This document shows positions 1-59,402 of a stretch of 64,000 bases of DNA, in pieces (positions within the stretch are counted from its first letter, which is position 1; every line of letters begins with the position of its first letter). The stretch is taken from contig CM119380.1 in assembly GCA_051294905.1 (NCBI GenBank), positions 14,756,001-14,820,000 on the forward strand. The letters are read 5' to 3'. The stretch is from Botryllus schlosseri (taxonomy: Eukaryota). The translations under genes were made by a program, and so were the position numbers. The notes below the pieces were generated by a model. That model ran no database searches, had not been told where the DNA came from, and saw only the letters and a program-made list of their open reading frames with translations.

Positions 1-314
1 TTTGAAATAGGCAAGTTATAACTATGTTGTCCGGTCACCATGTCACAAGTAGATTTATGCCACTTGTCATCAAAAGCATCATCTCCAGTAACCCATTTTT
101 CCACAGATACTCCACAGCAGTAACATCTTACTCTATCTTGAAATCCTGTCCAATAGAAACCAGCAGCGGCTAGATAACTCGGTATCACAGGAGTTTCTTT
201 CGGAAAATGTTTGAACGTTGCAAGTCTGTAATGTTCAACCCGGTGATCTCCAGGTGGAATATAAATGCAATTATGTCCAGGAGGATCACAATCTCTTTTC
301 ATCAGAATGCCCAT
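1..314 (-). CDS. iap: BIR-domain inhibitor-of-apoptosis-like protein, 3'-truncated by the window edge
   Basis: Manual translation from ATG at 314: MGILMKRDCDPPGHNCIYIPPGDHRVEHYRLATFKHFPKETPVIPSYLAAAGFYWTGFQDRVRCYCCGVSVEKWVTGDDAFDDKWHKSTCDMV... The motifs RLxTF..FP, LAxAGFY..G..D.V.C..C and W..H..C match a BIR domain. The frame is open to position 1. Confidence 0.9.
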   Translation of the reverse strand, partial: MGILMKRDCDPPGHNCIYIPPGDHRVEHYRLATFKHFPKETPVIPSYLAAAGFYWTGFQDRVRCYCCGVSVEKWVTGDDAFDDKWHKSTCDMVTGQHSYNLPIS

Positions 315-554
315 AGTTTCAATTCGGTCGTTTCTCGGTATAATTGCTTTCGATGGAACAGGCGTTCAATAATACAGATCAAAATGTCTAAATATAACCA
401 TATCAATCCAACATTCTAGTAATAATACATAAACATTCTGTTAAAAAAATATATCATTATATAAGATTTCTCGAGGTTCCAAATTAGCATTGGTTCGATA
501 AATTCCATGGATTAGGTGTGAAGTCATTATTTAATCGTCAATATGTAACAACAG

Positions 555-1214
555 TTAATGGAGATGTATGTCCAAAATATAGGAATTTTCCAGATATTGA
601 TTCATTGACTGGGCTTTCTTATCTACTTTCTTCGAGTATATGTATATATATGCATCCATAACGGAGGTATCAGAACTTAACAACATATAACCTTTTACTC
701 CTAGATTGGTTTGGCTGTGCCAAGTCCATTTGCAATTCGCATCTGTAACATAAGCCAGACTATTTGCACATACCAACAATCTTGTATGGCCCATTACTAC
801 TCCTCGTATCACTTCATATATTACTCGTCTCATACATAGGGGAGGTATTCTTCGGACAACTCCCATCAAGGTTTCCGTAATTATAGTCCATGTATCGTCA
901 TCGGGTCGTATTGTCTGTTTATTCCATACTATGAGTCGTTGTCTTGAGGAATCTTTCACAATGGCAGAATCTTGGGAGTCGTCAGAGTCCGTATTACTAG
1001 AAATTTCATCCTCCGGCGTTTCTCCATGGGGTTTCCTGTCGCCACATGGAAGTTGTCTTTTGTACCAATTATGTTCTTGTTCAAAAAAATTTTTCAACAT
1101 ATCCATCAGCAACTTTAGACATCCAGTATTTTTTCGCACGTCGATTTTATCTAGTTGATTCATCAATTTACAAAAAATAGCAGTATTATGATCCTGTACT
1201 TCAGATAGATACAT
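555..1214 (-). CDS. Hypothetical protein, novel family A copy 1 (219 aa from first ATG)
   Basis: Intact ORF. Shares RRVIYEVIRGVVM and W..QTNLGVKGY with the ORF at 4251-4907. Confidence 0.8.
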   Translation of the reverse strand: MYLSEVQDHNTAIFCKLMNQLDKIDVRKNTGCLKLLMDMLKNFFEQEHNWYKRQLPCGDRKPHGETPEDEISSNTDSDDSQDSAIVKDSSRQRLIVWNKQTIRPDDDTWTIITETLMGVVRRIPPLCMRRVIYEVIRGVVMGHTRLLVCANSLAYVTDANCKWTWHSQTNLGVKGYMLLSSDTSVMDAYIYIYSKKVDKKAQSMNQYLENSYILDIHLH

Positions 1215-1490
1215 TTTATCCCTGCGAATATAACAATAATGTGCAATAACAATAAAAGATCCCAATTCAAGATTTCAATGCATCAAATCTCGCTATTAGA
1301 TATCATATAACATGTAATACATTCACTCACTATGATACAACAGTAATATAATCAACTCATATATGTACTTTAATAGAAACATTTCATAGGTTTTTTAAAC
1401 ATGTAGATTATCATACATGCCTCCATTGTTTTCCTAAAGATTCAAATCACTCATATCTGATGATATTGCACATAGTGACCAACATTGTTT

Positions 1491-2438
1491 TCAATGTTCC
1501 AATGTCCTAAAGTTAGGATCAAGAGCAATTATCTCTAAAAATAGTTGAAACCTTTCCTCCAAGGCCACCCTTCTTTTCCAAAGCCACTCCTGTAAGTAAT
1601 GAGGAATAAGTGATCTTGATACCCCATTCAGCCTTCTAATAGCAGCTTTAAAAAAATTCCAAGACACCTCGATCAATTGTGTATTTATGCCTTCTGGGGT
1701 TACAAATTCGCGATCATGATTAACTATTGAATGTTTATAATTCATTCCCAGGTTTTCCAACTTGCGGTAGCTGGCGAATGAATCAGTCCATATAGTGGAT
1801 CCCTCTTTTACGTGTTTCATAATTATTTCTGATAATACAGAGGTTTTTCTCCCTTCTTCAGGTACCAATTCTGCAAACATTTCTCTCGTTTTCATATCTA
1901 TTCCAGCCAAAACCCAGCGTTGGCGTATTATTCTTCCACGATTAAATTTTCTTTTGGCCACAAACGTTTCATCAATTTGAATTACATGTGATTTACCTTG
2001 TGATATTCCCCCTATTAGGGTACCTCTTCTTTCCATTTCCCCAGAGCATATCTTACGAAGTTTCTTGGTCCAATTCACCATTGTTCTCTTGCTGACGTGT
2101 GCTTCAAAAGCTATTTGTCGTTGAGATACATCTATGGTCCAAAGATAAATCATCATTACAAGTTGGGTGAGTCTTATTTTACTTCCTTCAAATAGCGATC
2201 TTTTCCTTATGGACGTGGTAGTCCTGCACTTTGAAACCGGACACCTCCATCTATATCCATCCATAGTTCTTTTGCATTTTTCTTCTTTCATTTGTTGTCC
2301 ACAATTAAAACATGTTGCCTTTTGAACAAGGAGTTGCCGTGATCGCAGAAACTTTATACATTTTCGTTCACTTGATATTATACCACATCGAGCAAGATTG
2401 AATAGATTTTTTCTTTTTCTGGGTTCTTTAGTCTTCAT
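1491..2438 (-). CDS. Merlin/IS1595(ISXO2)-like DDE transposase 1
   Basis: N-terminal Zn ribbon (CFNC...RWRCP..C), SIRKRSLFE, an HTH-like region, and catalytic motifs IQIDET / WTDSFASY / NTQLIEVSW. Intact 315 aa. Confidence 0.9.
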   Translation of the reverse strand: MKTKEPRKRKNLFNLARCGIISSERKCIKFLRSRQLLVQKATCFNCGQQMKEEKCKRTMDGYRWRCPVSKCRTTTSIRKRSLFEGSKIRLTQLVMMIYLWTIDVSQRQIAFEAHVSKRTMVNWTKKLRKICSGEMERRGTLIGGISQGKSHVIQIDETFVAKRKFNRGRIIRQRWVLAGIDMKTREMFAELVPEEGRKTSVLSEIIMKHVKEGSTIWTDSFASYRKLENLGMNYKHSIVNHDREFVTPEGINTQLIEVSWNFFKAAIRRLNGVSRSLIPHYLQEWLWKRRVALEERFQLFLEIIALDPNFRTLEH

Positions 2439-2506
2439 ATTTATTTAGAACTTTATTGTCTTTTCAAAAGTAGTTTCTGTATATACAAACATTGGAAAGT
2501 TAAATT

Positions 2507-3013
2507 TCATGCAGGTATTTTCAAAACCATAAATTGACAATCGGCTTCTTTTATGGTTATTTCCTGCGTCTTCGCCCACGAGTAGATTTGAGCTTCCGGA
2601 AAGATTATCCACATTATGAGATCTCTTTCAGAGTCTCCTTTTTTTAGAAATTCCCGCATTTCAGGATTTACTCTTTTTAAAATTGTTACCCAGTTTATGC
2701 AGATTTCTGCAAAAGCCATTTGTATAGGTTTTTCAGGGTAAATGCTTCCTGTATAAATTTCTTCCCACTCATCTTCAACCAGATGTTTCCCAGGCCAATG
2801 ATTATTACATGTAGTAAGACCATACTTTTGCTTCCAATATTGCAGCCGTGGATTTAATTCGTCGTACATTATGTCACATAAATGATCCGTTAATGTATAT
2901 GTTGTTAACAGAAACTTCAGCGACTTTAATCCTTTGTCTATTAGTGTTTCTTTTTGGGGTATCCATATCAAATGTTGTATTTCCGGATCATCACAACGCA
3001 ATCCCAAACACAT
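2507..3013 (-). CDS. Hypothetical protein, novel family B copy 1
   Basis: Intact 168 aa ORF. MCLGLRC, NPRLQYWKQ and WIIFPEAQI match MCYGLLC, NPRVQYWQQ and YVLYPEAII in 6286-7146. Confidence 0.8.
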   Translation of the reverse strand: MCLGLRCDDPEIQHLIWIPQKETLIDKGLKSLKFLLTTYTLTDHLCDIMYDELNPRLQYWKQKYGLTTCNNHWPGKHLVEDEWEEIYTGSIYPEKPIQMAFAEICINWVTILKRVNPEMREFLKKGDSERDLIMWIIFPEAQIYSWAKTQEITIKEADCQFMVLKIPA

Positions 3014-3115
3014 TTTGATACTTTATTATGTTATACTATACAAAATATATAAGATCAGTTACCTATTGCCATGTTACAATACTGCACCGAATTTCAATAT
3101 TTATACTTAAGCATT

Positions 3116-4156
3116 TTACATTAGTCTAATAGTAACTAGCCAAACACTAGCGGCAAATGTACATTTTGAATGTATAGTCACGGGATTGGAAAAACTTTTC
3201 ATTACATCATAATATAATCTTGATTGTTTACGAACATAGGGTCTTTTGGTAGACGTTCCATTATTATATCCATTTAATTTTAAAACCTCCAAATATGGCA
3301 ATTTTCTCCGTAGAGAATCACTCAGAAATTGAACATGATTATAACTAAGGTCAATAGTATGTAAATATTTGAACGATGTGTTGGAGGACAGAGAAAAATA
3401 TTGCAAGTTATTATAATACAACGTTAATCTCTCTAAATTACACAAAGATTCAAGTATTGTCATATCAAATTCCACCAGTTTATTTTCATCCAGGTTTAAA
3501 GTTTCCAGTTTACTCAGTCCTTTAAACGCCCCTTCTTCTATAGCGCTTATTGCGTTTCTTGATAAGTCTAGTATTCTTAAACGACGTAAATGAATGAATG
3601 TTCCGTTCTTTAGTTTCTTTATGACATTGTTGTCCAAATATAGTCTTTTTAATTTTTCCATGCCTGCAAATTTTGATCCTTCTATTTCTGCCAGCAAATT
3701 ACTGCTCAAGTACAAACTTTCCAGTTGGTGTAAGCCTGCAAAGCTTTCTTTTTCAATTCGTGTGATGTAGTTTCGTATCAAATTTATCTCCCTAAGCTTT
3801 TCGTTTTTGCAGAAGACTCCTCCTGGTATGGTTTGGATTTTATTCCACCCACAATGCAACACCTCTACGTCTTTATACTTTTCCAATTGTCCTTTGGTTA
3901 TTTCCCGTAGGCAGCTGTCGTTGATGAATATCTTTACTGTGTTCCGGCAAGATTTTGCCAGGTATATCTTGTCAGGATCTGGAATCCTTGTATAACTCGA
4001 ATGATCACACCAAAGTACCAAATTGCTTCCTTGCATGCATTCCGGGTATAACATAGTTCGTCTTTCATTCTTTGTACATTTCTTTTGTTCTATTGTTTCC
4101 GGATAAATAGCATAACACGTGCCCAGCCATAATACTAGTAGTTCCACTCGGTTCAT
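3116..4156 (-). CDS. Signal-peptide leucine-rich-repeat protein (secreted or surface)
   Basis: Hydrophobic N-terminus MNRVELLVLWLGTCYA, a Cys-containing cap, and about 8-9 repeats of LxxLxLxxNxIxxIxxxxF. No canonical LRRCT cap, transmembrane (TM) helix plus tail, or TIR signalling domain. Single ORF. Confidence 0.88.
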   Translation of the reverse strand: MNRVELLVLWLGTCYAIYPETIEQKKCTKNERRTMLYPECMQGSNLVLWCDHSSYTRIPDPDKIYLAKSCRNTVKIFINDSCLREITKGQLEKYKDVEVLHCGWNKIQTIPGGVFCKNEKLREINLIRNYITRIEKESFAGLHQLESLYLSSNLLAEIEGSKFAGMEKLKRLYLDNNVIKKLKNGTFIHLRRLRILDLSRNAISAIEEGAFKGLSKLETLNLDENKLVEFDMTILESLCNLERLTLYYNNLQYFSLSSNTSFKYLHTIDLSYNHVQFLSDSLRRKLPYLEVLKLNGYNNGTSTKRPYVRKQSRLYYDVMKSFSNPVTIHSKCTFAASVWLVTIRLM

Positions 4157-4250
4157 TTTACTTATGAATTAGATAATTCACTTTGTTATTTTACTCCTTT
4201 GAAAAAGGTTTTTTGTAAGTCAAAATCTTATTTACATTCGTTGTCATTAC

Positions 4251-4907
4251 TCATAATTGTTCCGGTATTATAGAGTCAATGTTCACACTTTCCCCTCCGT
4301 AGGGGTAAGGGTGTATTTCTATACGCCTTATCCTTTTTGTTCGCCAATGTATTGAACTTGAATAGCCTTTTATGCCCAAATTATTCTGACAATTCCATTG
4401 TTCCATATGCGGCGGATCTTTACAAATTTCTCTCTCCTGGTACACGTCCTTTGTTATATTAGTGTTTGTAAGTTTCATCACCATTCCTCTAATTAATTCA
4501 TACAACATGACTCTTCTTCCCAAAGAGGTGTATTCCTTTGCTCTTATTTCAAATATCTCATCTACAACATGGTTGAATTGTTCAAGAATTTCTTCGGTTA
4601 ATTCCTCATCTAGGGCTACCTCTTCTAGGCCATTGTCTGTTTGTTTAACCCAATCAACTCGGTCCGTAAGCAATTCCCATATTGTTTCTTTAAACTGGTA
4701 TCTCTCATATTCGCTGTTATATTCTTTAAGATTCAATAGATCCAATTCGTCATATACATCGTACAAAAGACACCAATTTGTTGGATCGTAACCTTCAATA
4801 TAATCAAAATCTAGCATTCTTTTTTTTCCTTTCTGCATCAAAATATACAGATTTTTTTCAAACAAAATAGAAATTTCGCACAATTTACCATTTTCATGTA
4901 TACTCAT
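4251..4907 (-). CDS. Hypothetical protein, novel family A copy 2
   Basis: Intact 218 aa ORF. RRVMLYELIRGMVM and W..QNNLGIKGY are shared with 555-1214. Confidence 0.8.
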   Translation of the reverse strand: MSIHENGKLCEISILFEKNLYILMQKGKKRMLDFDYIEGYDPTNWCLLYDVYDELDLLNLKEYNSEYERYQFKETIWELLTDRVDWVKQTDNGLEEVALDEELTEEILEQFNHVVDEIFEIRAKEYTSLGRRVMLYELIRGMVMKLTNTNITKDVYQEREICKDPPHMEQWNCQNNLGIKGYSSSIHWRTKRIRRIEIHPYPYGGESVNIDSIIPEQL

Positions 4908-5249
4908 ATAAACTCATGTATACTCCATACTCGTTAAGACATTTATCAATTCATTAATCACCCAATACTTATTAGGCAATAAATCTCTCCCCCCCACAAG
5001 GGATTTAATTATTTTGTAATTTTCTATTTTCTGGTTTTTATTTATATACTTTTTTTTCTCATTAAGATTTTATCTCGTATATAGTTTTTATCCTTCGGTT
5101 TAGGTAATAATTTTATCAATTTTTATGATCTATAAACATAATCCGACATTTTATTTTTTTGAAGATTTTTTTAGTGGGGAAAGTTATACAACATATCAAC
5201 TTAAACAATAATAAAAAGTGATATTACTCATCATCCCTGCCTTCCCTTT

Positions 5250-6165
5250 CATAAGAAATTTTTAGACACGAGTATCTTTGAATGACAAAAAATTTTCAAG
5301 GGTCATTAATACAGCGTTGTCCATAACAAGTAATACACCACTATGTCTCATAGGGATTAATAGAAGAAGGGTGCCAAGAGACAGGAATGTGAGTAATCAG
5401 CGAAGTATTACTCTACAAAACTAATACATATTTAAGTATTGGATACAATACTAGAGGTTAAGTCCATTATTGCGCATGTTATGTACAGTACAATAAATAT
5501 TTACATAATCGGAAAATATTATAAAATCAGCAATAACATAAATAGCAGCAAACTGGTATGAGGCTCATACAAAGAGATTTGGCAGAGCGACAATTTTGGG
5601 CAAAATGAAAAATATTAGCTCACGTCAGCCTTTATATAATTTAATTCGATTAGCATTACATTTAAATAGTGAGCACGAGGTGATTTGAGGTAGGATAGGT
5701 AGTCTGGGGCCATTACAGATTATTTTCAACACAAAATTGCAGCCGAAAACACGTACATAACATACAATATTATGGGAAATAGACATCGTACAGTTCCTCA
5801 TAATTTACAATAACAAGTTCCTCTCGAATTTAAAAAGTTTTTGCAATAAAGATAGGTCGATCTTGCATTCAAGTAATCAAGTTCTTATAATCCCCGGGTT
5901 GTTATTCTAGGGGAGGTGGTAGTGGGTACAATCCCAGCGATTGATCAATGTATCGAAATCTTTTAATAAAAAGGGAAACTGTATTAAAATCTGAGTATAT
6001 ATATAGTAAAATACAGGTATATAGTTTTTACTTTTGCTAGTCTCAAGTTTCCACCATAACCGGCTTTTATGCTTTTTCCCGTTAAGTTTGACTTTTGGTA
6101 GTGGTGCCGAATTGATAAGTTGTCCTAAACCACCACCAGTCAGCCCTAAATAATTCAGTTATCAT
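5250..6165 (-). pseudogene. Decayed ORF of unknown family
   Basis: One minus frame runs from about 6000 to 5700 with only sparse stops (IYSDFNTVSLFIKRFRYIDQSLGLYPLPPPLE*QPGDYKNLIT*MQDRPIFIAKTF*IREELVIVNYEELYDVYFP*), with apparent frameshifts on either side. Boundaries are approximate. Confidence 0.3.
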
Positions 6166-6285
6166 GGCTTGTCTAATAGGCTAGCCCTAAAAGTCCAAAT
6201 CAACCTATCCCATAACAAATATTACGTCTCTGACGTGTTTCCGAAGACAATTTCTAAATCAAACTAATAGTAGCTTATTTTCAAA

Positions 6286-7146
6286 TCAGCCCATTTTACC
6301 ACTAAAGGCAGCATGGGGTCCGTCTACACTGGGCCTCCGTAAAACTATCATTCGGGTTGGAGCCTCTAGTCTGTTTGGAAACCTACTGTCTCTACTGGTC
6401 GAAGACTCAATATTAAACAACGATGTAGTTTCCGAATTGGTATTTTTGACTATTTGTTTGTCACCCTCTTTTTTTAGCGAGTTTTCAAAGATTGATTCCG
6501 ACACTTGGTCAACCGGTAGAATAAAAACACCTCCCACATAACCAAACGTACTCGTGGACCCGTATGTAAATCTCCACTGTTCTAGATTTCCCCCAAATAG
6601 GAATTCAAATTCTGCATCCATCCTGCACCTCGTAAAACAAAATGTTTGTATGTTTTTTGCCCCCCGATATTGTTGCAACAGGAGAGCTATGGCGGTTATT
6701 ATCGCTTCCGGATATAACACATAAAGTACTATATGTCCTTTATCTATTTCGGTGTTTTGATCTAGTCCTTTGTGCATACTACAAGCTTCTTTTAAATAGT
6801 CATGGCATAATGTCATAAGTTCCAAAATCTGCCCGGTATTCTTGAAGTACGGTCTTACGTGCCTCATAAGGTAACATTGTTTACATTCACCATTCCCAAC
6901 AGGGTGAAAAAGCTTTCCTATTTTTGTCCAGCCCTCCTTGTTGTACATACATTGTTGCCAATATTGCACCCTTGGATTGTCCCGCTCACAAGTGCCGAAC
7001 AAGAGGCTCATCAAACGATCCCGAACCGGCGCAGTTTTTATGGTTTCCATTACCATCTGCTGCCTTTGAGTAAGAGTGAACTGCATTGCCCACTCGTAGA
7101 CAACCTTGTGATCCGTATTAGGGTTGCACAATAGCCCGTAGCACAT
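6286..7146 (-). CDS. Hypothetical protein, novel family B copy 2
   Basis: Intact 286 aa ORF with ATG at 7146 and TATAAATA about 25-30 nt upstream. Paralogous to 2507-3013 with a longer C-terminus. Confidence 0.8.
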   Translation of the reverse strand: MCYGLLCNPNTDHKVVYEWAMQFTLTQRQQMVMETIKTAPVRDRLMSLLFGTCERDNPRVQYWQQCMYNKEGWTKIGKLFHPVGNGECKQCYLMRHVRPYFKNTGQILELMTLCHDYLKEACSMHKGLDQNTEIDKGHIVLYVLYPEAIITAIALLLQQYRGAKNIQTFCFTRCRMDAEFEFLFGGNLEQWRFTYGSTSTFGYVGGVFILPVDQVSESIFENSLKKEGDKQIVKNTNSETTSLFNIESSTSRDSRFPNRLEAPTRMIVLRRPSVDGPHAAFSGKMG

Positions 7147-7329
7147 TCCTTTCTTTAACTAGTTCACTATTTATAATCTTAATACAAGATAATTCCTCGT
7201 CATTCATAATACACTTTAGGCACAAGTTAATAACCTAACTTTTATTCACCATAAATTCAGTCCATATAATTGATAATATTCACATCATTCCACTGAATAT
7301 TTTAGTTAAAACGTTTTATTGTAATTTCA

Positions 7330-7848
7330 TTATTCGTTAACGTGATGCGATGTTGTAGGTTGAGGCTGATTAAAGGATGATTGTTGCGAAAACATTATAC
7401 TACCAAAAGATGCATAAGTTCCATTTGTCGTGACATTGTTATTAGGCGGTGCATCATTGTTTGTAGTAGATGATGTCAGAGAGGACGTCAAGGGAGTATT
7501 ACTTGTCGATGTCGAAGAGCTTGCTCTTATCTCTGTGTTCCGATTCTGTTTGTTTGAGGCAGTTTTTATTAGCAAATATGGTTTTACTTTTGCTACCTTG
7601 CGATTTCGCAAGTGTTTTCTACGATAGTCATTTCGCCATGGCCATTCTTTGACCTTTTCATTACTCGCTCCCATTCCTTCGAAGAAGATTTCTGCATAAC
7701 GTCTAGTTCCATTTTTAATGTCCTCGAAAAAATCATTCCATCGTTGTAATCTTTCTGTCTTTTTCACCCCCCGAAGTTCCTCATACCATAGTTCAATATT
7801 TTCAATAGATAGCTCCCATAATTGTTCTTTAGTTATTGAGGCAGACAT
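7330..7848 (-). CDS. Hypothetical protein with Trp-rich N-half and Ser/Thr/Asn low-complexity tail
   Basis: Intact 172 aa ATG ORF, co-oriented with its neighbours. No family recognised. Confidence 0.65.
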   Translation of the reverse strand: MSASITKEQLWELSIENIELWYEELRGVKKTERLQRWNDFFEDIKNGTRRYAEIFFEGMGASNEKVKEWPWRNDYRRKHLRNRKVAKVKPYLLIKTASNKQNRNTEIRASSSTSTSNTPLTSSLTSSTTNNDAPPNNNVTTNGTYASFGSIMFSQQSSFNQPQPTTSHHVNE

Positions 7849-8868
7849 TCTTTAATTTACTGCACCGCGTTATTTTTACACCTTAAAAAATAATAATGTT
7901 TCTTTCAGCCGAGCTTATCGTATGATATCGTTAATGATATTTCAAACACTGAATTTTGTTAACTCTTTATTAATCCTATTTGGGGTTAATTATTTCTTTA
8001 CTGGATAAGGAAAAGTGTAATCTCTGGCCACTTGAGATGTGATGTCTAAAATATCTATTCCGACGTTTTGGCAGAGGCGTCAGCCTGTCACATAATGGTA
8101 TATTTTTATACATTACAATAAATCAGAGTAGTTTGCTCCAGATTCATCAAAAGTAAAATTCTCTACAAGCTCAACGCGACACTTTGTCCCTCGATTCCTT
8201 GTTTTTAATATTGCTGCCCCTTTTTTTTTTTATCATGAAAAACAGCCAATTTACTTAGATTGAGTCTAACTATACTCGCAATTTCGGGACAAAGTGCCGT
8301 TGAACATGTGTGACCTTACATTTGCGTTTGCAGTAGATACTGCTTACTATGAAACCTATGCACGTAGAGATTGACGCATGTTGGTCTCAGCTACTTGCGT
8401 TATCCATATGTCCATGCGCTGAATAGCCTATTCCTCATAGACTTAGCCCAGCGATATGCGGTAAGCCCGCAACAGGGCCTAGTTACAATATCCTTGGCCT
8501 ATGAATTTCTAAAGTTTTTTCGCGTTTCACGAGGTAGTGGCCTGTACAGTATTTCGTTAATCGAATGTGTCCCTTAGGCTGAAAAAGGTTAACCAGCCTT
8601 GACTAAACCAAACCTTTATTTTGTATCACCTACCAACCTAATTGTTCTCTCTTTCTTAAAGTCTGCTGAATAACCTATTATTATTCCATGGCTACACAAG
8701 AATTCTTTTTTTCAAACGAAAACACATTCGTCCACAATATGTAATTGTTTCACTATGAAGCACAGAACACATAACATATCTTGTAACAGTCGCAACATTG
8801 TCAATGCTCATTTTAAGATTTTGCTGATCACACCAATTTGTACATTTTAATCATATAACTTTCCGATT

Positions 8869-9390
8869 CTACTCGTTACACCGGGGGCGCCAAAATATTC
8901 TATCAAGGCGTCTGAGAGTGGCCTCGTCAAGAGGTGGTAACTGTTCATGATCTGAGGATAGATCGGAATCGCTACTATCAACTCCAGAGTCAGTGTCGGG
9001 TAGAGTATTCAGACTCTCATCCGAGTCTGTAAAATCACCGGACTCGGAATTCGGATAAGGTCCCGATTCATGATCTGAGTAAAAATAGGATTCCATATCA
9101 TCATGTCCAGACTCAGTATCCGACGAGATACTTAAACTATCATCCGAGTCGGTTAGATCTAATTCCGAATCGGTACTATCTCCCCAAATCGAAGGATTTC
9201 TTTCAAAATAGCTTTCCAATGTGGCCTCGTCAATTTGTTGATCATTTTCCTCATTTTCATCTGCTTCAGGCGATGTTTGGCATGATTTGAGAATTTCATC
9301 TATATTTTTTAATACCACAATCCACCTCCCGGTCCAGATTTGTTCATCCAGAACAGAGGGCTCCATGGCCTCAGCACTTGTCATGGCCAC
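8869..9390 (-). CDS. Acidic Ser/Asp-rich protein with internal duplication
   Basis: 173 aa ATG ORF with repeats TDSDDSLSISSDTESG / TDSDESLNTLPDTDSG and IDEATL / LDEATL. TATA-like sequence lies upstream at about 9430. Confidence 0.65.
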   Translation of the reverse strand: MAMTSAEAMEPSVLDEQIWTGRWIVVLKNIDEILKSCQTSPEADENEENDQQIDEATLESYFERNPSIWGDSTDSELDLTDSDDSLSISSDTESGHDDMESYFYSDHESGPYPNSESGDFTDSDESLNTLPDTDSGVDSSDSDLSSDHEQLPPLDEATLRRLDRIFWRPRCNE

Positions 9391-16159: not shown

Positions 16160-16402
16160 GTCAAAAACTCACTTTAATTTTACGGACCAGTTATTAGCGT
16201 TCATATTGAATTAGAATCGAGTGTTTAGAATTTGTTTTGTATAGTAAGGATGTCAGTGTAGCGAGTGATTATAATATAAGTCAAAAACTCACTTTAATTT
16301 TACGGACCAGTTATTAGCGTTCATATTGAATTAGAATCGAGTGTTTAGAATTTGTTTTGTATAGTAAGGATGTCAGTGTAGCGAGTGATTATAATATAAG
16401 TC
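16160..16402. repeat. Perfect 120-bp tandem duplication (2 copies)
   Basis: The unit gtcaaaaactcacttt...gattataatataa starts at 16160 and again at 16280; the copies are identical by eye. Confidence 0.95.
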
Positions 16403-17040: not shown

Positions 17041-17385
17041 TCACCACGAGCAATGTGCTATTTTCGTAAAGTAGGGGTTGGCGTCCTTCCGATCATTCAT
17101 CAAGCAAATTTTTGTCGCTATCCTTTGTACTCCGGCATGATTAAGCCCCCCATTACAGACAAATTTCACCCTTTTGCTACAGTTAAAGATTTCCTGTTCG
17201 TCAATTACCCACTGTAGCGCTTCCGTTCCCACCATTAATTGTGGCCTTATTGTGCAAGATTTTTGCAATGGCGTGATCAACCCATCAATTGGGGTCGTAT
17301 TTTGCCGTTTTTGCTAAATTAAGTTTTTCCTATTCGTCAATATGTCATTGCAACATGTACAAAAATTACGCCATCCTGCTTCCAT
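17041..17385 (-). pseudogene. Cys-containing ORF interrupted by one in-frame TAG
   Basis: MEAGWRNFCTCCNDILTNRKNLI*QKRQNTTPIDGLITPLQKSC... continues in frame into the track ORF at 17041-17280. Confidence 0.35.
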
Positions 17386-17512
17386 ATTTACTTACTATTG
17401 CATTACTTAATCCTTCCAAATGTAATGCTTCCATATTTACTTACTATTGCAATACTTAATCCTTCCATATGTAATGCTTCCATATTTACTTACTATTGCA
17501 TTACTTAATCCT
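17378..17512. repeat. 49-bp tandem repeat, about 2.75 copies
   Basis: The unit gcttccatatttacttactattgcattacttaatccttcca(a/t)atgtaat starts at 17378, 17427 and 17476. Confidence 0.95.
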
Positions 17513-17808: not shown

Positions 17809-20800
17809 CTATCTCAGTTTTTCGTGCAATGTTACTGCTGTAATATACGTCTTTCGATTATTCCGCCGAATAACATCCCTAAGATAAGTTTTTGCTGCGA
17901 CCCTCCTGCATTTCGCATAACATAAATACATACATCCTACCATTATTGTTACGAAAACCGCAAAAATCAAGGCATTGTTAAGTGATTCTTCTAAATCCTT
18001 TCTATTGTTAATATCAACAATAATTTTACCTGCTGCATAACCTTGTTCCATTTCTTGTAGTTTGTGCAGTCGTCCATAGAAGTCAAACGTAATTTGGTCC
18101 AGTCTGTCATATTTGGTCGTAGGTAAGGTATGCGGTATACTGAGTGTATCTTTTCCTTCTTCTTCGATAGAGGGTGTAATTGAAGAAAGTGCACTATTGG
18201 AAGCACTCTTCCAACTTCTGATCACATCATTGTTACTTACTGATGTGGATTCGCTCTGATAGTCCCCTGATGAAAGTATTGATGTTGATTTAGTTCTTAC
18301 CTGTAAGTCTTGCTCATTGTTTAAATTATCTAGTTCTGTATTAGAGCGGGACTTGCTGGTGGCGAAATATTGGTGCGTTTCGACTGTCGTTGCTACTTGG
18401 GTTGTATCAAACAGCACATTGAAATGCGCTCTTGGCGATGTTGTGTCCATGAGTTGATTTGTGTGATGACGTAATTGAATATAAGACTCAGGTATCTGCG
18501 TAACCTGGGGTGTTTTCCTTATTGGCACGGATAAGGAGCCTAACATTTCATCATTTTTTGAGGGTATTTGATAGGTCATGGTATGCTTCGCGATTACTCC
18601 TCTTTCCATTGGTACACGCGTTGTTAACCCACTTTCAGAAAAGGTGACTCCTGTTGTAGCAATACCATTGCTTTGCTGAGTGTCCATCTCTGTTGATATA
18701 GCCATAGATGGTTCCACAATTGTGAAAATATTAGTGGGACTCGTTCTGCGTCTTTCTTGATCACTAGTAGTTTTCACTGTAGTTAAGAATGTAGTAATAG
18801 ATGTAGTTGGTCTTGGGCTGGAGTTATCTTCGCGTGGGGAATGCACAGTAGTCAATATGGCTGGGAGCGGTGTCGATGAAGTCGTTCCGGAAATTACAAT
18901 GGCCGATGTCAACCCTCCAGTATATGGTGTGATTGCAGCAGTGGATAATGTGGTCGTAATACTATCTGTCGTAAGTGTAGACGTTCTTGGCGTGGAAATT
19001 GTTGTATCCCTTGTTAACTCAACCGTATATTGAGTATTTTTAGTCGATGTTGGAGTTTCAATCATTGGTAACGCCATTGTAGTTTCAATAATATTTGTGG
19101 AATCTGTAGTGTGAGCTACGGGTATGGGCCTACGTTTTAACAAAACATCATATTCTCCGTCTTGGTCATAGTAATCGTAGTAGTAATTTCCAGAGTCTTG
19201 AAAGCTAGTATTATCGTCATAACCGGCATAGCTAAATCCTTCGTCATAACTTTCTATATAATCGTAGTTATAGTGGTTAGTATTGTATTGATTCGTCATT
19301 CTTACATTTTCCTCAGTAAGTGTTATGGTTTTTTCCCGTGTCACAGTGGGTCCTGGAGTCGCTACAACAGAAGTGATATCATCCCACATACCAGTCTCGC
19401 TACTAGGAGGCACTCCTCGAGTGATTCCTTCGTAACTTACAGTCCTTGTCGTTATTGTTTCCGCGTTACTTCGTGGCATTACGGAGCTAGGAGGTACTTT
19501 TCGAGTGGTTCCTTCATAACTTACAACCTTTGTTGTTATTGATTCCGCGGCACTTAATGGCATTTCAGAGTTAGTTCTGATTTTGTTATTGTCCTTATAG
19601 GCATAAGGCGTATACACCAATATTCCAGCACATATTGTGGCTGTGTAGGCCACACTAGGTCGGAATATCCGGATATCATGAAACTGCACCTCTATGAGCT
19701 TGCGTGTTGACATATAGCTCAGTAACTCTTCATTTATCTTACTAAGTTTCTGAGGTGTCAAGGCTGACCGTAGCGCCTGACTTAGAGACTCCATCTCTTT
19801 ACCAGTTATGGACCTGTCCAATCTCCCCAGTTTTCTTCGCATTTTATATATGGGCAGGGACAACTGGCGTAAACGCCGTTTCGTTACTTCTACGTAATAC
19901 ATTCCTAGGCGAGCTAGATAATAGTCCATATTCCTTGTATTTTGCCCATTGCTTTTAAATGATGCAGTCAGGATAAAGTCACCTAATCTACCGGGTTGTT
20001 TACAATTGGGTAGACTCTTAGGCCATGCTTTGAGTGGAGATTCCTGACCTGCAGGTCTTGGAGATGCAATTTGTAAACGACCGTTGCCATGATCTGCATA
20101 CACGGGTTGATTTGTATATGGATCATATAACACTTCCTTAAAGGCCAACGCCGTTTTTAAACTTCCAATTGAATTACGACAAACCTTCTTATTTTTTTTG
20201 CGTTCACATTCTATGCTGCCTTGCAATATAGTCGGAAAATTTCTCTTCCCCATTATCCGTTGAGTATCATTATTTAGATGTTCGCGAAGGGCGTAAATCC
20301 TCAATCTAAACCAAGTATGACCATCAAAGTTCGCTGGCCTCTCCCTGGGGCCTGTCTCATTTCGAGCCTTCAACCACACGATGTCGTGATGTAATTCGGG
20401 TAATTTGACTCCTGCTGGCCATTGACTGTAGGAGTAAGCTTCTTGCGTTCCCATCCCTGATCCTCCGATGCTATTATCTATTTCCATGATCACAAAGTCT
20501 CTGGACAGTATATTTACTGCCAGATCATCTGTGAAAAATGAGCATCCTAGGCATTGTATCTGATTAGCTTCTCCTTGCACACATACGTTAAATTCGGCTT
20601 TATTGACTCTCCATCCCATGATATCCTCTGAACGCTGCTGGCACCTTGTTGTCACTGTTGCATATTGCGCCAAGATATTCATCACTGATAACTTGTACAC
20701 CGTCAACAGCTGGTGTATAGTAACTTGTGGAGTAGCATTAGGAGAGATCATCCGAAGAATAGCCCTAGGCACAGCCATAGTGCCGCGTGCTTCCCTTCCA

Positions 20801-21279
20801 ACCACATACTTCCATGTATGTATTAAACCAAAGTTATTCTTTCGACGATATGTTGTGGTTCTAGTCAAGGCTGCCAACGTAATATCGGGAGATATTCTTG
20901 ATAGTTTCCGATTGCACCCGCATTCTCTTTCATATTGTCTAACATTATTCCAATACCTCTTGTCAGACCCCGAGGGTGCAAATAACTTGTACAATTGATC
21001 TTGGCTAGCTCGTGTTGGACCAAATTTGGGCGTCTCTTCGTATATTGAAAAATTATTTTCCGTTTCACCTATTGGCCAACTCTCGTTTAATTTGAATAGT
21101 CGATTAAGGCGGATGTATCTAAGACTTTGATTCCGGAACGTTGTCCATCCTGTAAGATTAAATGCTAACCTCACACTCATAGCAGATAGGGGCAATAATT
21201 GGCCATGAATTTGCAGATATCCTCGGTGTAGTGTTAAAGCTACTGCCAGCACAATCCATAATTTAAAGTAACGATTCAT
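17809..21279 (-). CDS. Type I membrane glycoprotein with Cys-containing head, mucin-like stalk, TM helix and short basic tail (putative attachment protein)
   Basis: Signal peptide MNRYFKLWIVLAVALTLHRG and N-glycosylation sequons. Thr/Ser/Pro-rich region at about aa 570-1045. TM ALIFAVFVTIMVGCMYLCY. Intact 1156 aa single ORF. Confidence 0.88.
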   Translation of the reverse strand: MNRYFKLWIVLAVALTLHRGYLQIHGQLLPLSAMSVRLAFNLTGWTTFRNQSLRYIRLNRLFKLNESWPIGETENNFSIYEETPKFGPTRASQDQLYKLFAPSGSDKRYWNNVRQYERECGCNRKLSRISPDITLAALTRTTTYRRKNNFGLIHTWKYVVGREARGTMAVPRAILRMISPNATPQVTIHQLLTVYKLSVMNILAQYATVTTRCQQRSEDIMGWRVNKAEFNVCVQGEANQIQCLGCSFFTDDLAVNILSRDFVIMEIDNSIGGSGMGTQEAYSYSQWPAGVKLPELHHDIVWLKARNETGPRERPANFDGHTWFRLRIYALREHLNNDTQRIMGKRNFPTILQGSIECERKKNKKVCRNSIGSLKTALAFKEVLYDPYTNQPVYADHGNGRLQIASPRPAGQESPLKAWPKSLPNCKQPGRLGDFILTASFKSNGQNTRNMDYYLARLGMYYVEVTKRRLRQLSLPIYKMRRKLGRLDRSITGKEMESLSQALRSALTPQKLSKINEELLSYMSTRKLIEVQFHDIRIFRPSVAYTATICAGILVYTPYAYKDNNKIRTNSEMPLSAAESITTKVVSYEGTTRKVPPSSVMPRSNAETITTRTVSYEGITRGVPPSSETGMWDDITSVVATPGPTVTREKTITLTEENVRMTNQYNTNHYNYDYIESYDEGFSYAGYDDNTSFQDSGNYYYDYYDQDGEYDVLLKRRPIPVAHTTDSTNIIETTMALPMIETPTSTKNTQYTVELTRDTTISTPRTSTLTTDSITTTLSTAAITPYTGGLTSAIVISGTTSSTPLPAILTTVHSPREDNSSPRPTTSITTFLTTVKTTSDQERRRTSPTNIFTIVEPSMAISTEMDTQQSNGIATTGVTFSESGLTTRVPMERGVIAKHTMTYQIPSKNDEMLGSLSVPIRKTPQVTQIPESYIQLRHHTNQLMDTTSPRAHFNVLFDTTQVATTVETHQYFATSKSRSNTELDNLNNEQDLQVRTKSTSILSSGDYQSESTSVSNNDVIRSWKSASNSALSSITPSIEEEGKDTLSIPHTLPTTKYDRLDQITFDFYGRLHKLQEMEQGYAAGKIIVDINNRKDLEESLNNALIFAVFVTIMVGCMYLCYAKCRRVAAKTYLRDVIRRNNRKTYITAVTLHEKLR

Positions 21280-21365
21280 ATTATTATAAATTAGTTAGTA
21301 TATCTGTGGACTTATGAAAAAATTAAATTAATAAAAGTAAAATCCTTTAAATATATATGCGTGCA

Positions 21366-23882
21366 CTACATTTTTGTCGATTTGGTTGTTTTAACGGGGG
21401 TCGATACCGATGATATGTACATTGTCAACTGAGTATTCGTGTTCCGCCGTTGTACCTTAGGTTTTAACTTAGGACAGCAAAGACTGCTATAACGACAGAA
21501 ACAAAACAAGATGATCCCGGCCCCTAATATCAAAATTACTGGAATCAGAACAGACCCCAAGCCAGAAAAAATTCCGTTCACTCCCTTACTGAATATTCCT
21601 CCGACCGCACCTAGTCCTTCTTGTAGTAGATTTCCTGTACTCTCTCCTACAGATTTTATCAAGCTTTCGGCACCGTGTGTCATGTCTTCTATCGTTTGGC
21701 CCAAGTTTTCCATAAATTTTTCTCCTCCCACGAATTCGAAAGGCTTCACTGTAATATTCTCATATCGCCAATCAGAAATGTTCATGTACACACTCTTGTT
21801 CAGATCTTCTCTCCAAACTTGCAAACCCAAATCCACATTCTGTTGGGTTTGATCTATATTGATACGATTGGCACGTAGTTCCACTCCGATGTCATTCGTC
21901 TCATTGATGTAAGCGTCTCTATAGGCTGTTAATTGCTGAGCATGCTCTTTTATCCGTAACGTTCCTTGCCGGATTTTCGTGAGATATACCTTGCTGGAGT
22001 CAAATATTAACTTTCCAGTCAAATTAGCCAATTCGTCCAAAACCAATCGGTCGATGGCTAATTCGGCATCACTCATTTCCTTATAGTTTTGAAAAGAGGT
22101 CAAAGAAGCTGTTGCTTGTCGTATTATCATTTGTCGATTTCTTTCTATGTACTTTTCCATTAGTACAAGTCGTTTATCTGTCAGTGATGTCCTTACTTCC
22201 ATGGCAGCGATCGTTTGATCCAGTTTTTGTTGTTGTGCTATTTGAAGTAACGAGAGCTCGTTAATCTTTCTCCCTAGTGCAGTGGACCTCTGTGTGGCCT
22301 GTATCATTCTATTATTGATCTGTTGGCTAAGGTTCACCGTCTCTTCATGTAACTGGGAGGAAACTGTCGCAACGACGGCGATTGTGGATATTACGGCAAA
22401 CACAAGACATATTAGTCCAGACAGAAACCTTTTACGTCTTCTCCGCGCACCCCTTTTGGTACCAGCTCTCGATGCTATTTCTCCCTTAATTTCTATCGGG
22501 CCTCCCGGGAAACGTGGTCGGTTTAGCTCCGGATCAAAATGAACATGGTCCCAAAAGGCTGCCTTTAAAACGGGTCCACCCACTGGGTCGCGACACAAAT
22601 CCTGGTTATGTGATATTCTATTTTTACATGCTTCATCCGATGCAGTAAGAGAGGGGAAGTGTTTCCACATGGGCCTGGGAAAAGGTATCCATGTTGATAT
22701 AGATGCCTTAAACCTAGTCGGCACACCATCAAAAAGGTTATTCCACCTCATGCCCTGATTGCCGCGATTAGCATACACACTGTGATCCAAATTTGGAAAA
22801 GACGGTTGTATCCATTTTACTCTAGGAGGGAAATTTGTCGTTGGTAGATCACCCCATATAGTGGTATTCATTCCAGGCCAGAAATTGCACGAATGGGCTA
22901 TTACCCCACCATCAGGCCAGAAGTGCTCAAACCAGTACTGATTAATCCATCCCCCCTGGGCCCGGCATGGAATGAACTTATTGCGCATATACGGCCATGT
23001 ACTTATTGTAGTCATTACTATTTCTTGGATGATTATATCTGCCTTATTTGGTTCCAGAGCAGAAATCACTCCTCTAAAATTACACCTTGTACAGATTCCT
23101 TTTCTGACCCCCTTTACCCTCCAAGAGTGGTATTGTTGCCAAAAAACACTATGGGAGGCATAATCTTTATCTACTAGATGCCAGCATTGTGTAAAACTAT
23201 TGCTACTGGCATTATACTTATTTAATTCACTTAATTTTTCTTTGTCCCCGTCTCTCATTGGCTCTTGAAGACATGAGGCTTCAACAGCTGAATAACTTTC
23301 GAATAGTCGTATCATAATCAATTTAAATTTGGTAAGAGCAAACATGGAGTAATTCCTGCCAAGGTCATGATACCAGTAATAGTCCCCATTCCAGAACCAG
23401 CGAATCCTATAATACCCTATTGGACGTATGAACATGTTTGTTTGTTTAAGAACATCATAGGAAATATTGGGCGTGATCTGGCCCAGGCGCCGTTGACAGA
23501 GACAGGTGCGTTCAAATTCTTGTACACTTGTCCAATATCTTCCATGTGGAAACGCCATTTGTTGTAATGAAAAACGCTCAGCTACTACGTAACCAAATGA
23601 CTTGCTGTAAAATAGCTCAGGCCGTCTATATACATGTCGCTCCGCCGTTTTGTTGAAAATGCTCATCAAGTGATAGTCCTCCCATTGTGTATCATTTAGA
23701 GTGATCCATTCTTCAGGCAGGGGTCCCCGTAGTTCCCCTAGCGTCCCCTGAGTGAAAGACCGTGCCCTATTTGTTACAGGATCTGCAAGTCCGTGCATGC
23801 CTTTCGCCGCCGTATGCAGCACCAAATCAGACGTACAAATGATACCAACAAGGATAGACAGAGAATAAGGAAGGATGTCCAT
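21366..23882 (-). CDS. Class I viral fusion-type envelope glycoprotein (838 aa from first ATG)
   Basis: Signal peptide MDILPYSLSILVGIIC. Multibasic site RRRRKR (22428-22445) is followed directly by the hydrophobic peptide FLSGLICLVFAVISTIAVVATV. Then long heptad-like helices, a Gly-rich membrane-proximal segment, TM VLIPVILILGAGIILF, and a Cys-cluster tail FCFC..LCC. Confidence 0.88.
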   Translation of the reverse strand: MDILPYSLSILVGIICTSDLVLHTAAKGMHGLADPVTNRARSFTQGTLGELRGPLPEEWITLNDTQWEDYHLMSIFNKTAERHVYRRPELFYSKSFGYVVAERFSLQQMAFPHGRYWTSVQEFERTCLCQRRLGQITPNISYDVLKQTNMFIRPIGYYRIRWFWNGDYYWYHDLGRNYSMFALTKFKLIMIRLFESYSAVEASCLQEPMRDGDKEKLSELNKYNASSNSFTQCWHLVDKDYASHSVFWQQYHSWRVKGVRKGICTRCNFRGVISALEPNKADIIIQEIVMTTISTWPYMRNKFIPCRAQGGWINQYWFEHFWPDGGVIAHSCNFWPGMNTTIWGDLPTTNFPPRVKWIQPSFPNLDHSVYANRGNQGMRWNNLFDGVPTRFKASISTWIPFPRPMWKHFPSLTASDEACKNRISHNQDLCRDPVGGPVLKAAFWDHVHFDPELNRPRFPGGPIEIKGEIASRAGTKRGARRRRKRFLSGLICLVFAVISTIAVVATVSSQLHEETVNLSQQINNRMIQATQRSTALGRKINELSLLQIAQQQKLDQTIAAMEVRTSLTDKRLVLMEKYIERNRQMIIRQATASLTSFQNYKEMSDAELAIDRLVLDELANLTGKLIFDSSKVYLTKIRQGTLRIKEHAQQLTAYRDAYINETNDIGVELRANRINIDQTQQNVDLGLQVWREDLNKSVYMNISDWRYENITVKPFEFVGGEKFMENLGQTIEDMTHGAESLIKSVGESTGNLLQEGLGAVGGIFSKGVNGIFSGLGSVLIPVILILGAGIILFCFCRYSSLCCPKLKPKVQRRNTNTQLTMYISSVSTPVKTTKSTKM

Positions 23883-24011
23883 GGTACAGACAGTGGTGGT
23901 TCTCGCCACGTCATAAACTAAATATAATCGCGCACTAAACCTAGACTACCGTCTGTAAAAACACAAAATAACAGATGTCGTCATTTCCGTATTGGAACCT
24001 TATAACGGGGT

Positions 24012-24977
24012 TCACAAATGTGGTAATACAGGAGGCCCATCAAATTTGTCAAGATTATACCGTGGATCATTGTGTATGGTGCGCAGGAGTGCCAAGAATC
24101 GGTCAGTCTTTTGATGTTGACGTTTCCACAAAAACTCCCCTACGTAGTCGGCCAAAAGATGACGTGCTAGACCACGAGATCTATGTAAATGATATTTAAG
24201 CTGGCCCCAGGCCCCCTCGATTTCATTAGTACAAAAAGCTGTCCGAGGGTCCTTAAACCAACGGGAGTGGTCCACTACACCGTGTATATAACCCTTCCCC
24301 CAGCTCTCTATGCCCTTGTAGGAAGGATAGGCATCGGTTAGAATCGTGGACCCCTCTGTCACATTTTCTACTATGAGTTTTCGAAATACTTCAGCAGTTC
24401 TGTCAGAAGTTATTTCAATGAACATTTCTCCGGTGGCTTTGTCTATTCCTCCAAACCCCCAAATGGCTTTAACAGCTGGTCCTTTACCAGAGGCAGCCCG
24501 GCGCTTGGCTAAGTGCGTTTCATCAATAATCACGCAACCGCCTTCCTTTCCCAAACGTCGCTTGTTCCTGTGAAATTCGGCCGTACACAGCTTTCGCAAT
24601 TTGCCGCACCAGGTAACCGTTGAACGCTGGCTAATCTCAGCTTCATGCGCGATTTGGGTTTGCAATGCGTCATGGGCCCAAAAGTAGAATAAAATCAACA
24701 ATTTGGGAAGTTCTACCTTACTTCCTGCGAATATCGAGTTTTTCCGTATAGTCGCCGTTGTATCACACGGATTGCATCGCCATCTAAATCCATCACCGCC
24801 AGTGGTCGTAATTTCTTCATTCATTATTTTTTTACATCGTTTGCATTTCATCCTTCGCACCAACAACCCGTGATTTCTCAGAAATAGCACACAATCTCGT
24901 GTTTTTAGTAGTGCACCCGATTCGACCAGACTCAACACATTGTATGTTCTTCCCAACGTATCTGCACAAGTAAACAA
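24012..24977 (-). CDS. Merlin/IS1595(ISXO2)-like DDE transposase 2 (start codon uncertain)
   Basis: CKRC...RWRC..C Zn ribbon, TIRKNSIF, and catalytic motifs IIDET / LTDAYPSY / TNEIEGAW. The first in-frame ATG is only at 24851. Confidence 0.88.
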   Translation of the reverse strand: MFTCADTLGRTYNVLSLVESGALLKTRDCVLFLRNHGLLVRRMKCKRCKKIMNEEITTTGGDGFRWRCNPCDTTATIRKNSIFAGSKVELPKLLILFYFWAHDALQTQIAHEAEISQRSTVTWCGKLRKLCTAEFHRNKRRLGKEGGCVIIDETHLAKRRAASGKGPAVKAIWGFGGIDKATGEMFIEITSDRTAEVFRKLIVENVTEGSTILTDAYPSYKGIESWGKGYIHGVVDHSRWFKDPRTAFCTNEIEGAWGQLKYHLHRSRGLARHLLADYVGEFLWKRQHQKTDRFLALLRTIHNDPRYNLDKFDGPPVLPHL

Positions 24978-55364: not shown

Positions 55365-55498
55365 TGTAGATAGTAATTGTATTAACAGAATCAGTACAGG
55401 CAAACTTAGTCCGACCCACCACCGCCGCCGCTCTCACGTTCTCCCCACACCAGTGCCTCTCGCAGGTCCTGGTGCACATACAACGCATGCAAACCACA
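55365..55498 (-). repeat. 3' LTR
   Basis: Identical to 59403-59536. Confidence 0.97.
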
Positions 55499-55575
55499 TA
55501 CCCCCCTGATCTCAAGATCAAAAGCAAACGAAATGAAACAAATCACTAAACAATGCAACAAACTATAATATAATG

Positions 55576-59387: not shown

Positions 59388-59402
59388 ATTGCCGCGATAG
59401 CT

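Follow-up and report, generated by a model that had tools for sequence, protein, structure and literature searches.

A fusogen accompanied by a non-fusing partner recurs in enveloped viruses, and the partner is usually an unrelated protein or a product of the same gene. In filoviruses one gene gives rise to two products, GP and sGP, by transcript editing, and sGP is secreted. Pneumoviruses encode a cleaved class I fusogen, F, and a Ser/Thr-rich attachment glycoprotein, G, side by side. G is a type II protein and is unrelated to F. The vertebrate receptor-interference genes of the Fv4 type are fixed in the host and were derived from retroviral env genes. Envelope fusogens are also found on endogenous mobile elements of invertebrates. 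In the F-type env of the Ty3/gypsy errantiviruses a furin site and a fusion peptide are conserved, and in a published survey of env-carrying Ty3/gypsy elements F-type and gB-type env were the only types (PMC13524379). The giant gypsy-like Burro retrotransposons of planarians bear env and carry MATH/TRAF, BIR and ubiquitin-related cargo; their env is described as gypsy/F-like and forms part, in frame, of a polyprotein with integrase (PMC6431247). Here we describe a tandem pair of glycoprotein genes, A and B, in a stretch of 64,000 nucleotides of Botryllus schlosseri DNA (GenBank assembly GCA_051294905.1, contig CM119380.1, positions 14,756,001 to 14,820,000), which is referred to as the window. 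In our interpretation, to which we assign a probability of about 0.6, the pair goes back to a single env-type gene that was duplicated in a virus-like mobile element, and B would be the fusogen and A a non-fusing accessory glycoprotein.

The pair resembles each of the viral systems in part. As in the case of GP and sGP, two products have one N-terminal head with different continuations, and a mucin-like region occurs on a class I glycoprotein. However, there are two separate genes in B. schlosseri, the non-fusing form is membrane-anchored and no relation to the filovirus proteins was found, either by sequence or by fold (Foldseek). The arrangement of a class I fusogen that is predicted to be cleaved beside a Ser/Thr-rich glycoprotein is reminiscent of pneumovirus F and G, but in B. 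schlosseri the second protein is of type I and paralogous to the head of the fusogen itself, and no F-type relation of B was detected using Pfam or Foldseek. Like an Fv4-type gene, A is an env copy that keeps the putative receptor-binding part and apparently cannot fuse. In contrast to Fv4, this defused copy is carried by the element together with the fusogen, and it gained a long mucin-like stalk. What is new is that the partner is a separate gene visibly descended from the fusogen, with both states side by side in several diverged elements. The pair thus shows, before and after the change, how an env gene can give rise to an attachment or interference glycoprotein.

Homology of the two heads

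Three closely spaced genes were found on the minus strand of the window in the order transposase (24977-24012), B and A (Table 1). An earlier reading made from the sequence alone (the sequence-only reading) had placed two adjacent glycoproteins at 17809-23882, and these coordinates proved right. Open reading frame (ORF) A occupies 17809-21279 on the minus strand (1156 amino acids plus stop), and ORF B extends from the ATG at 23882 to 21369 (838 amino acids). Both ORFs are intact over their 1156 and 838 codons. Elsewhere in the window long ORFs are sparse, and the remainder of the 64 kb resembles animal genomic DNA. A TATA-like run about 70 nt before the ATG of A was read in the sequence of the B-A spacer.

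A and B have a head of about 370 residues in common. Comparison of A and B by BLASTP revealed two collinear matches with E values of 2e-9 (A 86-215 with B 96-206) and 1e-3 (A 346-394 with B 407-458). All four segment pairs that the sequence-only reading had quoted are present, and the first of them, read directly in the sequence, indeed has 13 identities in 28 positions. The Smith-Waterman alignment of the heads scored 110, compared to 37.4 ± 4.9 for 1000 shuffled sequences, none of which scored as high (z 14.8; Gumbel p about 4e-9). The end-gap-free global score gave a z of 12.6. Alignment of A-type with B-type sequences by hhalign resulted in a probability of 99.9% and an E value of 1e-35 over 323 columns, in which A 41-410 corresponds to B 55-471. 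The head profile match ends a few residues before the cleavage site RRRRKR of B. Within the head, eight columns with cysteine in both proteins are collinear (A 120, 122, 213, 233, 243, 246, 358 and 367; B 127, 129, 204, 233, 264, 267, 419 and 430). Across the family cysteine occupies five of these columns in at least 14 of 16 rows; for the other three the counts are 16 of 19, 10 of 13 and, at B 264, 6 of 15. On the basis of these alignments the heads of A and B are homologous and related through gene duplication.

The AlphaFold2 models of the two heads exhibited an identical order of helices and strands. The three-state assignments agreed at 262 of 324 aligned positions (81%). Where either model has a helix or strand the agreement was 62%, and sliding one string against the other gave 24% on average and at most 40%. 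This agreement supports homology but is no independent proof of it, because the models of A and B share alignment rows. Confidence in the head cores, expressed as predicted local distance difference test (pLDDT) values, was about 90 for B 85-300 and 410-450 and 80-93 for A from about 110 to 310. Two points weigh against a firm structural conclusion: the whole models are of moderate quality, with mean pLDDT values of 64 and 59, and the comparison was made by helix and strand order, not by superposition of coordinates. In Foldseek neither model found a match at E ≤ 0.001.

Architecture and proposed roles of B and A

B has an N-terminal signal peptide, a C-terminal anchor giving type I topology, and a putative protease site followed by a hydrophobic peptide, all of them features of the architecture of class I fusion proteins. 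The hydrophobic stretch after RRRRKR spans residues 484-512 and reaches a Kyte-Doolittle maximum of 2.67. The part of B before the cleavage site comprises about 450 residues, with six N-glycosylation sequons in the head. Among the family rows, basic residues occupy the last two positions of the site in all 24, and in 23 of 24 they also occur three residues before the cut. The predicted fusion core consists of a 95-residue helix (507-601), a second helix (605-622), a beta-hairpin (633-646), a third helix (648-694) and a heptad helix (720-748). The heptad pattern of helix 720-748 was reached by 3 of 1000 shuffles. For helix 507-601 (pLDDT 60-72) the single-register heptad score was reached by 805 of 1000 shuffles and is not significant. 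Cysteines 794, 796, 802 and 803 are located at the cytoplasmic end of the anchor, which is followed by a tail of about 37 residues.

The layout of B, a large surface subunit followed by a helical membrane subunit, appears to be that of a class I fusion protein; we infer cleavage, trimerization and fusion from it. B would be cut by a furin-like protease at RRRRKR, which would yield a membrane-anchored subunit starting with a hydrophobic fusion peptide. It would then act as a fusogen. Behind the peptide come the long helices, the conserved hairpin, the membrane-proximal heptad helix, the anchor and the short tail. We further infer that the head binds a receptor, solely from its position before the cleavage site.

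No R-x-K/R-R site was found anywhere in A, and the only strongly hydrophobic segment is the C-terminal anchor 1099-1124. The claim of the sequence-only reading that one head continues into a fusion subunit and the other into a mucin stalk and transmembrane segment with no fusion peptide therefore holds: B has RRRRKR and a hydrophobic stretch, and A has neither. Since cleavage site and fusion peptide were lost, A could be neither primed nor inserted into a target membrane, and it seems unable to act as a class I fusogen. The head of A carries seven sequons. Residues 566-1060 form a long, Ser/Thr/Pro-rich and cysteine-free region with the features of a mucin-like domain (151 of 495 residues Ser or Thr, corresponding to 30%; 30 Pro; 0 Cys), and an 84-nt (28-amino-acid) tandem repeat is found within it at 19403-19564. 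This stalk is presumably O-glycosylated. Cysteines 1116, 1120 and 1124 lie within the anchor and at its cytoplasmic end. A patch of the stalk (residues 661-715) contains 13 Tyr, 12 Asp or Glu and 1 Lys or Arg and is missing in P0037, the orthologue of A. Such a composition is typical of tyrosine-sulfation sites.

According to the proposed mechanism, A descends from a copy of a B-type gene. It would have kept the head fold, all eight shared cysteines and type I topology, and it would have lost the cleavage site and the fusion peptide. The Ser/Thr-rich stalk of about 495 residues, located between a helical neck and the anchor, would hold the head far above the membrane. With A and B in the same membrane, A would present a head like that of B at a much greater distance from this membrane and without fusion machinery. 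In this position it could make the first contact with a cell (attachment), or it could occupy or mask the ligand of the shared head (receptor interference). These two are the most likely roles of A; the sequence-only reading had proposed an attachment, decoy or superinfection-exclusion protein. The membrane anchor of A makes a freely secreted, sGP-like decoy unlikely. Most likely A is an accessory surface glycoprotein that serves the element, since the pair is conserved in diverged element copies.

Origin and age of gene A

The protein with head and fusion subunit is widespread (39 clusters in several kinds of elements) and appears to be the ancestral form, from which A was derived. The way in which A acquired its present continuation was examined by comparison of the regions beyond the head. 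Using hhalign, no significant match was found past A 410 / B 471, and the stalk of A has no counterpart in B. Both observations are in favor of a modular graft, that is, recombination of a head-coding segment onto an unrelated mucin-type membrane protein gene, so that the head alone is shared. Support for a graft also comes from locus L008, where the env gene P0041 is followed at 4795-8178 by the gene of a 1127-residue protein, which has a signal peptide and, at the C-terminus, a single membrane anchor. This type I membrane protein was considered as an A-type paralogue and rejected, as no similarity to A or B was detectable. It may be a non-homologous second glycoprotein in the position of A. 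An unrelated second glycoprotein gene can thus apparently occupy this position.

On the other side, weak collinear matches connect the post-head regions of the A-type proteins with the fusion subunit. A fusion-subunit profile touched both proteins at the anchor; in addition it touched the hairpin of A and, in P0037, a place close to where the helical region begins. In a separate shuffle test the profile scores were reached by 1 of 500 shuffles for A and by 4 of 500 for P0037. In hhalign A 537-560 matched the conserved B hairpin (625-648) with an E value of 0.0014. The tails showed a weak likeness: the score of P0037 against P0001 was reached by 0 of 2000 shuffles, and for A against B-type tails p was about 0.02-0.14. 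In addition, the models of both proteins predict long helices followed by a beta-hairpin, and both proteins have cysteines clustered at the cytoplasmic end of the membrane anchor. Because of these weak traces at the early helix, the hairpin, and the anchor and tail, a full-length origin is suggested for A, although it is not proven. A would have started as a full-length env copy that degenerated in place; its head would not have been transferred to a foreign stalk, and its post-head module may be a vestige of the fusion subunit. Two results speak against this conclusion: reversed-sequence controls scored nearly as high as the real sequences in the fusion-subunit profile scan, and the post-head hhalign match is weak, with a probability of 18%. 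On balance we regard a graft as unlikely, although it is the strongest of the competing explanations. The shared head and the duplication proposed by the sequence-only reading stand. Its wording that one head was "grafted on different stalks" and that a duplicated subunit was "split" is probably wrong, as the fusion-subunit form is apparently ancestral and A contains the collinear traces.

P0037 (722 amino acids) was the best match of A. The alignment extends over A 28-573, which comprises the head and the post-head module, and anchor and tail are also similar. P0037 is encoded directly after the B-type gene P0003 on one contig. ORFs of 628 and 463 amino acids, cut by the contig ends, follow the B-type genes P0001 and P0002. 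The contigs with P0001, P0002 and P0003/P0037 belong to SRR25569776 and SRR25569784, and an ORF of 613 amino acids was noted upstream of the transposase gene there. The B-type genes of the window element and of the P0003/P0037 element are about 32% identical. No second head copy was present in loci L001-L005, and a query with one further B-type env (P0041) gave a single match in each of L006-L008. The mucin form was found downstream of B-type genes alone, in the transposase-linked lineage. A neighbor-joining bootstrap tree of the heads, with distances computed after gap-rich alignment columns had been dropped, grouped A with P0037 (96.5% support) and B with P0002 and P0003 (99%). The duplication is probably old, because P0037 follows a B-type gene elsewhere and the A-type heads form a clade of their own. 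It appears to predate the split of these elements, with both copies retained.

Between the same two elements the A-type heads are 26% identical and the B-type heads 34%. Therefore, the A-type head evolves faster. This result and the tree have to be read with some reservation. Faster divergence of the A head fits a host-facing role but equally fits relaxed constraint, long-branch attraction could inflate the A-type clade, and the A type is known from two full sequences alone. Alternatively, A could be a decaying duplicate without a function of its own that has not yet been hit by a stop codon. The lower identity of the A heads would agree with such decay, as would the low-complexity stalk of variable length (722 amino acids in P0037 versus 1156 in A). 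However, the ORF of A is intact over 1156 codons, and an intact orthologue occupies the same position in an element with B-type genes of about 32% identity. Moreover, the eight shared cysteines, the post-head module, the anchor and the tail motifs are all kept. Decay is consequently very improbable, the least probable of the explanations considered.

The env family, its genomic contexts and other features of the window

An exhaustive HMMER search with B yielded 39 clusters, 24 of them at E ≤ 1e-10. All came from Logan or ENA assemblies and none was named. The full-length members agree in their head, in the basic cleavage site and hydrophobic peptide, and in a helical core that includes the hairpin. 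Conserved columns of the hairpin contain Gly in 27 of 27 rows, Tyr in 26 of 28 and Phe in 26 of 29. Word-based protein searches gave a single relative, P0001, when started from B and none when started from the A head; those with P0037 returned nothing but P0037. The broad alignment, A3, was too diverse for deriving search patterns. No relative or locus was found in the IMG/VR and JGI metagenomes.

Apart from one sub-threshold match, Pfam contained no relatives of B, A or all 42 family members. This match, of P0033 (1 of the 42 members) to Foamy_virus_ENV (PF03408), reached 23.8 bits compared to a cut-off of 27, covered the anchor region alone and was rejected as evidence of membership. The best match of the family to TLV_coat had an E value of 0.12. 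Sequence and profile searches of the PDB gave nothing significant; the profile search returned one envelope-glycoprotein chain at E 0.38 over the same anchor region, and matches to influenza HA2 helices (E 0.3-0.9) were treated as coiled-coil noise. The best Foldseek E values were 0.15 (PDB) and 0.10 (BFVD). Haemagglutinin-esterases appeared as weak Foldseek matches for both heads with TM-scores of at most 0.21, which we judged not credible. Consequently, the B family is a small env family without a named relative by sequence or predicted fold.

B also fits neither of the env types of the published survey. An assignment to the F type is opposed by the missing Pfam and fold match and by the large subunit before the cleavage site, where F has a small one. 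No match to the gB-type (class III) proteins gB, G or GP64 was obtained by sequence (Pfam, PDB) or by Foldseek. A gamma-type retroviral Env was not indicated either, as the ectodomain of B after the cleavage site lacks CX6CC and its sole cysteine, Cys 492, lies inside the fusion peptide.

The env genes of the family occur in gag-pol-env retroelements, next to IS1595-type transposases and in a cargo-rich array. Loci L001 and L002 show the order gag (with a CCHC knuckle), pol and env. The pol of L001 (6573-9308) contains protease, reverse transcriptase, RNase H and a C-terminal domain similar to the RNA 2'-phosphotransferase Tpt1/KptA (PDB, E 4.5e-7). In the PDB an 'Enzymatic polyprotein' chain (8r0s) was its best match and ranked above retroviral and Ty3 enzymes. 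The pol of L002 (4206-7190), also with protease, reverse transcriptase and RNase H, is about 40% identical to the L001 pol along its length, and no integrase domain was found in either of the two. L001 also has inverted repeats (1-3963 and 17910-21868) of at least 3.9 kb and 99% complementarity, and the 13.9-kb core between them contains the gag-like, pol and env genes. The left arm runs to the end of the locus, and the repeats may be longer. In L006 a protease-like ORF lies upstream of env.

An IS1595-type transposase gene precedes env in four contexts, namely the window, the P0002 contig, L004 and L007. The transposases of the several contexts are 37-50% identical to one another. In L004 a PWP3A-like gene (PWP3A-B_C, E 2.5e-11) lies between transposase and env, and fragments of an L001/L002-type pol (reverse transcriptase, RNase H and C-terminal part) were observed at 4148-7893 downstream of the truncated env on the same strand. 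For L007 a retroelement with the order reverse transcriptase, transposase and env was rejected, because its reverse transcriptase is of the type of long interspersed nuclear elements (LINE-like) and unrelated to the L001/L002 pol. The window transposase upstream of B matched PF12762 with 39.2 bits, and a second copy in the window matched this domain with 61.6 bits (cut-off 27). These two ORFs, 24012-24977 and 1491-2438, both on the minus strand, are 38% identical, their acidic motif positions align, and each has an N-terminal zinc-ribbon-like cysteine cluster. No in-frame ATG was found before the conserved N-terminus of the transposase at 24012-24977; an acceptor-like pyrimidine tract and AG precede the ORF.

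In L005 env stands in a dense same-strand array with MATH/TRAF-like, UQ_con and BIR+RING genes (5361-8220), and its reading frame is split over three ORFs. A BIR (IAP-type) gene that matches the BIR+RING gene of L005 runs off the left edge of the window (3 to about 350, minus strand). Both the L005 array and this BIR gene recall the cargo of the Burro elements. In contrast to Burro, no gypsy/F-like env, in-frame polyprotein or integrase was seen here. The errantiviruses are comparable in that they carry envelope fusogens on endogenous mobile elements of invertebrates (PMC13524379). They differ in env type, since B matches neither the F nor the gB type and has its large subunit before the cleavage site. 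Furthermore, the pol found with the B family lacks integrase, and the window copy lies behind an IS1595-type transposase.

Neither gag nor pol adjoins the module in the window, and no convincing pair of terminal inverted repeats or other terminal repeats was found to bracket 17809-24977. Element limits within the window, which were looked for via repeats, were likewise not found, and this counts against assigning the pair to a mobile element. Together with the intact state of both ORFs, the lack of gag, pol and terminal repeats around the module would be compatible with two host-domesticated genes, used for example in cell adhesion or cell fusion, that are no longer parts of a mobile element. 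Such a takeover is difficult to reconcile with three diverged B-type copies (P0002, P0003 and P0004) in one sequencing sample, with the position of the module beside a transposase gene in four contexts, and with related env genes inside gag-pol-env elements. We consider it improbable, if slightly less so than decay of A. The preferred explanation thus remains a duplicated env-type gene of a virus-like element. The presence of an unnamed env family in gag-pol-env elements without integrase and beside IS1595-type transposases suggests a kind of enveloped animal element that was missed by surveys of F-type and gB-type env. It is tentatively proposed that the pair represents an undescribed lineage of enveloped virus-like invertebrate elements. 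Such a lineage would possess its own class I-like env, an IS1595/Merlin-type DDE transposase replacing integrase, neither F-type nor gB-type in the case of env, and a two-glycoprotein entry system, consisting of a fusogen and a mucin-stalked attachment paralogue, that would have arisen by env duplication independently of F/G and GP/sGP.

Table 1: Coordinates of the transposase gene, genes B and A, and their predicted parts in the window.
Feature	Position	Strand	Basis or remark
IS1595/ISXO2-type DDE transposase gene	24012..24977	-	Directly upstream of B; Pfam PF12762
Gene B, env-like precursor, 838 aa	21369..23882	-	ATG at 23882; stop 21366-21368; class I-type fusogen architecture
B signal peptide, aa 1-26	23805..23882	-	Hydrophobic segment 3-26
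B head homologous to A, aa 55-479	22446..23720	-	hhalign covers 55-471
B putative polybasic furin-type cleavage site RRRRKR, aa 480-485	22428..22445	-	Motif read in sequence
B fusion-peptide-like hydrophobic segment, aa 486-512	22347..22427	-	Abuts cleavage site
B predicted helical fusion core, aa 513-748	21639..22346	-	AlphaFold2 model
B membrane anchor, aa 776-801, and cytoplasmic tail	21369..21557	-	Hydrophobic segment 767-803
B-A intergenic spacer	21280..21368	-	B stop codon and 86 nt; A+T-rich
Gene A, type I membrane glycoprotein, 1156 aa	17812..21279	-	Stop 17809-17811; apparently non-fusogenic paralogue of B
A signal peptide, aa 1-22	21214..21279	-	Hydrophobic core residues 7-17, read in sequence
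A head homologous to B head, aa 41-410	20050..21159	-	BLASTP, shuffles, hhalign, Cys columns
A post-head module, aa 411-565	19585..20049	-	Predicted helices 447-533, beta-hairpin 543-562
A mucin-like stalk, aa 566-1060	18100..19584	-	Composition
Tyr- and acid-rich patch in A stalk, aa 661-715	19135..19299	-	Composition
A membrane anchor, aa 1099-1124, and basic cytoplasmic tail, aa 1125-1156	17812..17985	-	Hydrophobicity, sequence

Other features of the window were recorded as well. No tRNA or Rfam features were found across it. A 49-nt unit is repeated 2.8 times with 96% matches at 17377-17512, beginning some 300 nt downstream from the A stop codon, and a perfect 120-nt tandem duplication is located at 16160-16399. 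The second transposase copy belongs to another same-strand gene cluster at 555-9390 (minus strand). This cluster contains two pairs of paralogous ORFs, one with weak PWP3A-B_C matches (2507-3013 and 6286-7146) and one of unassigned kind (555-1265 and 4251-4907). Its other members are an acidic ORF rich in Ser and Asp (8869-9390) and the gene of a leucine-rich-repeat protein (3116-4156), which has a hydrophobic stretch at its N-terminus.

A compact long terminal repeat (LTR) retrotransposon was found at 55365-59536. Its gag-like and pol ORFs are intact, and pol comprises protease, reverse transcriptase, RNase H, DUF7047 and integrase. The element looks recently inserted, because its two 134-nt LTRs are 100% identical and the ORFs are intact. 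Between about 32700 and 49000 several repeat families recur every 4.1-4.7 (approximately), 6.6 and 7.8 kb with 65-82% identity, which points to a diverged unit arranged in tandem, perhaps an intron-containing gene family.

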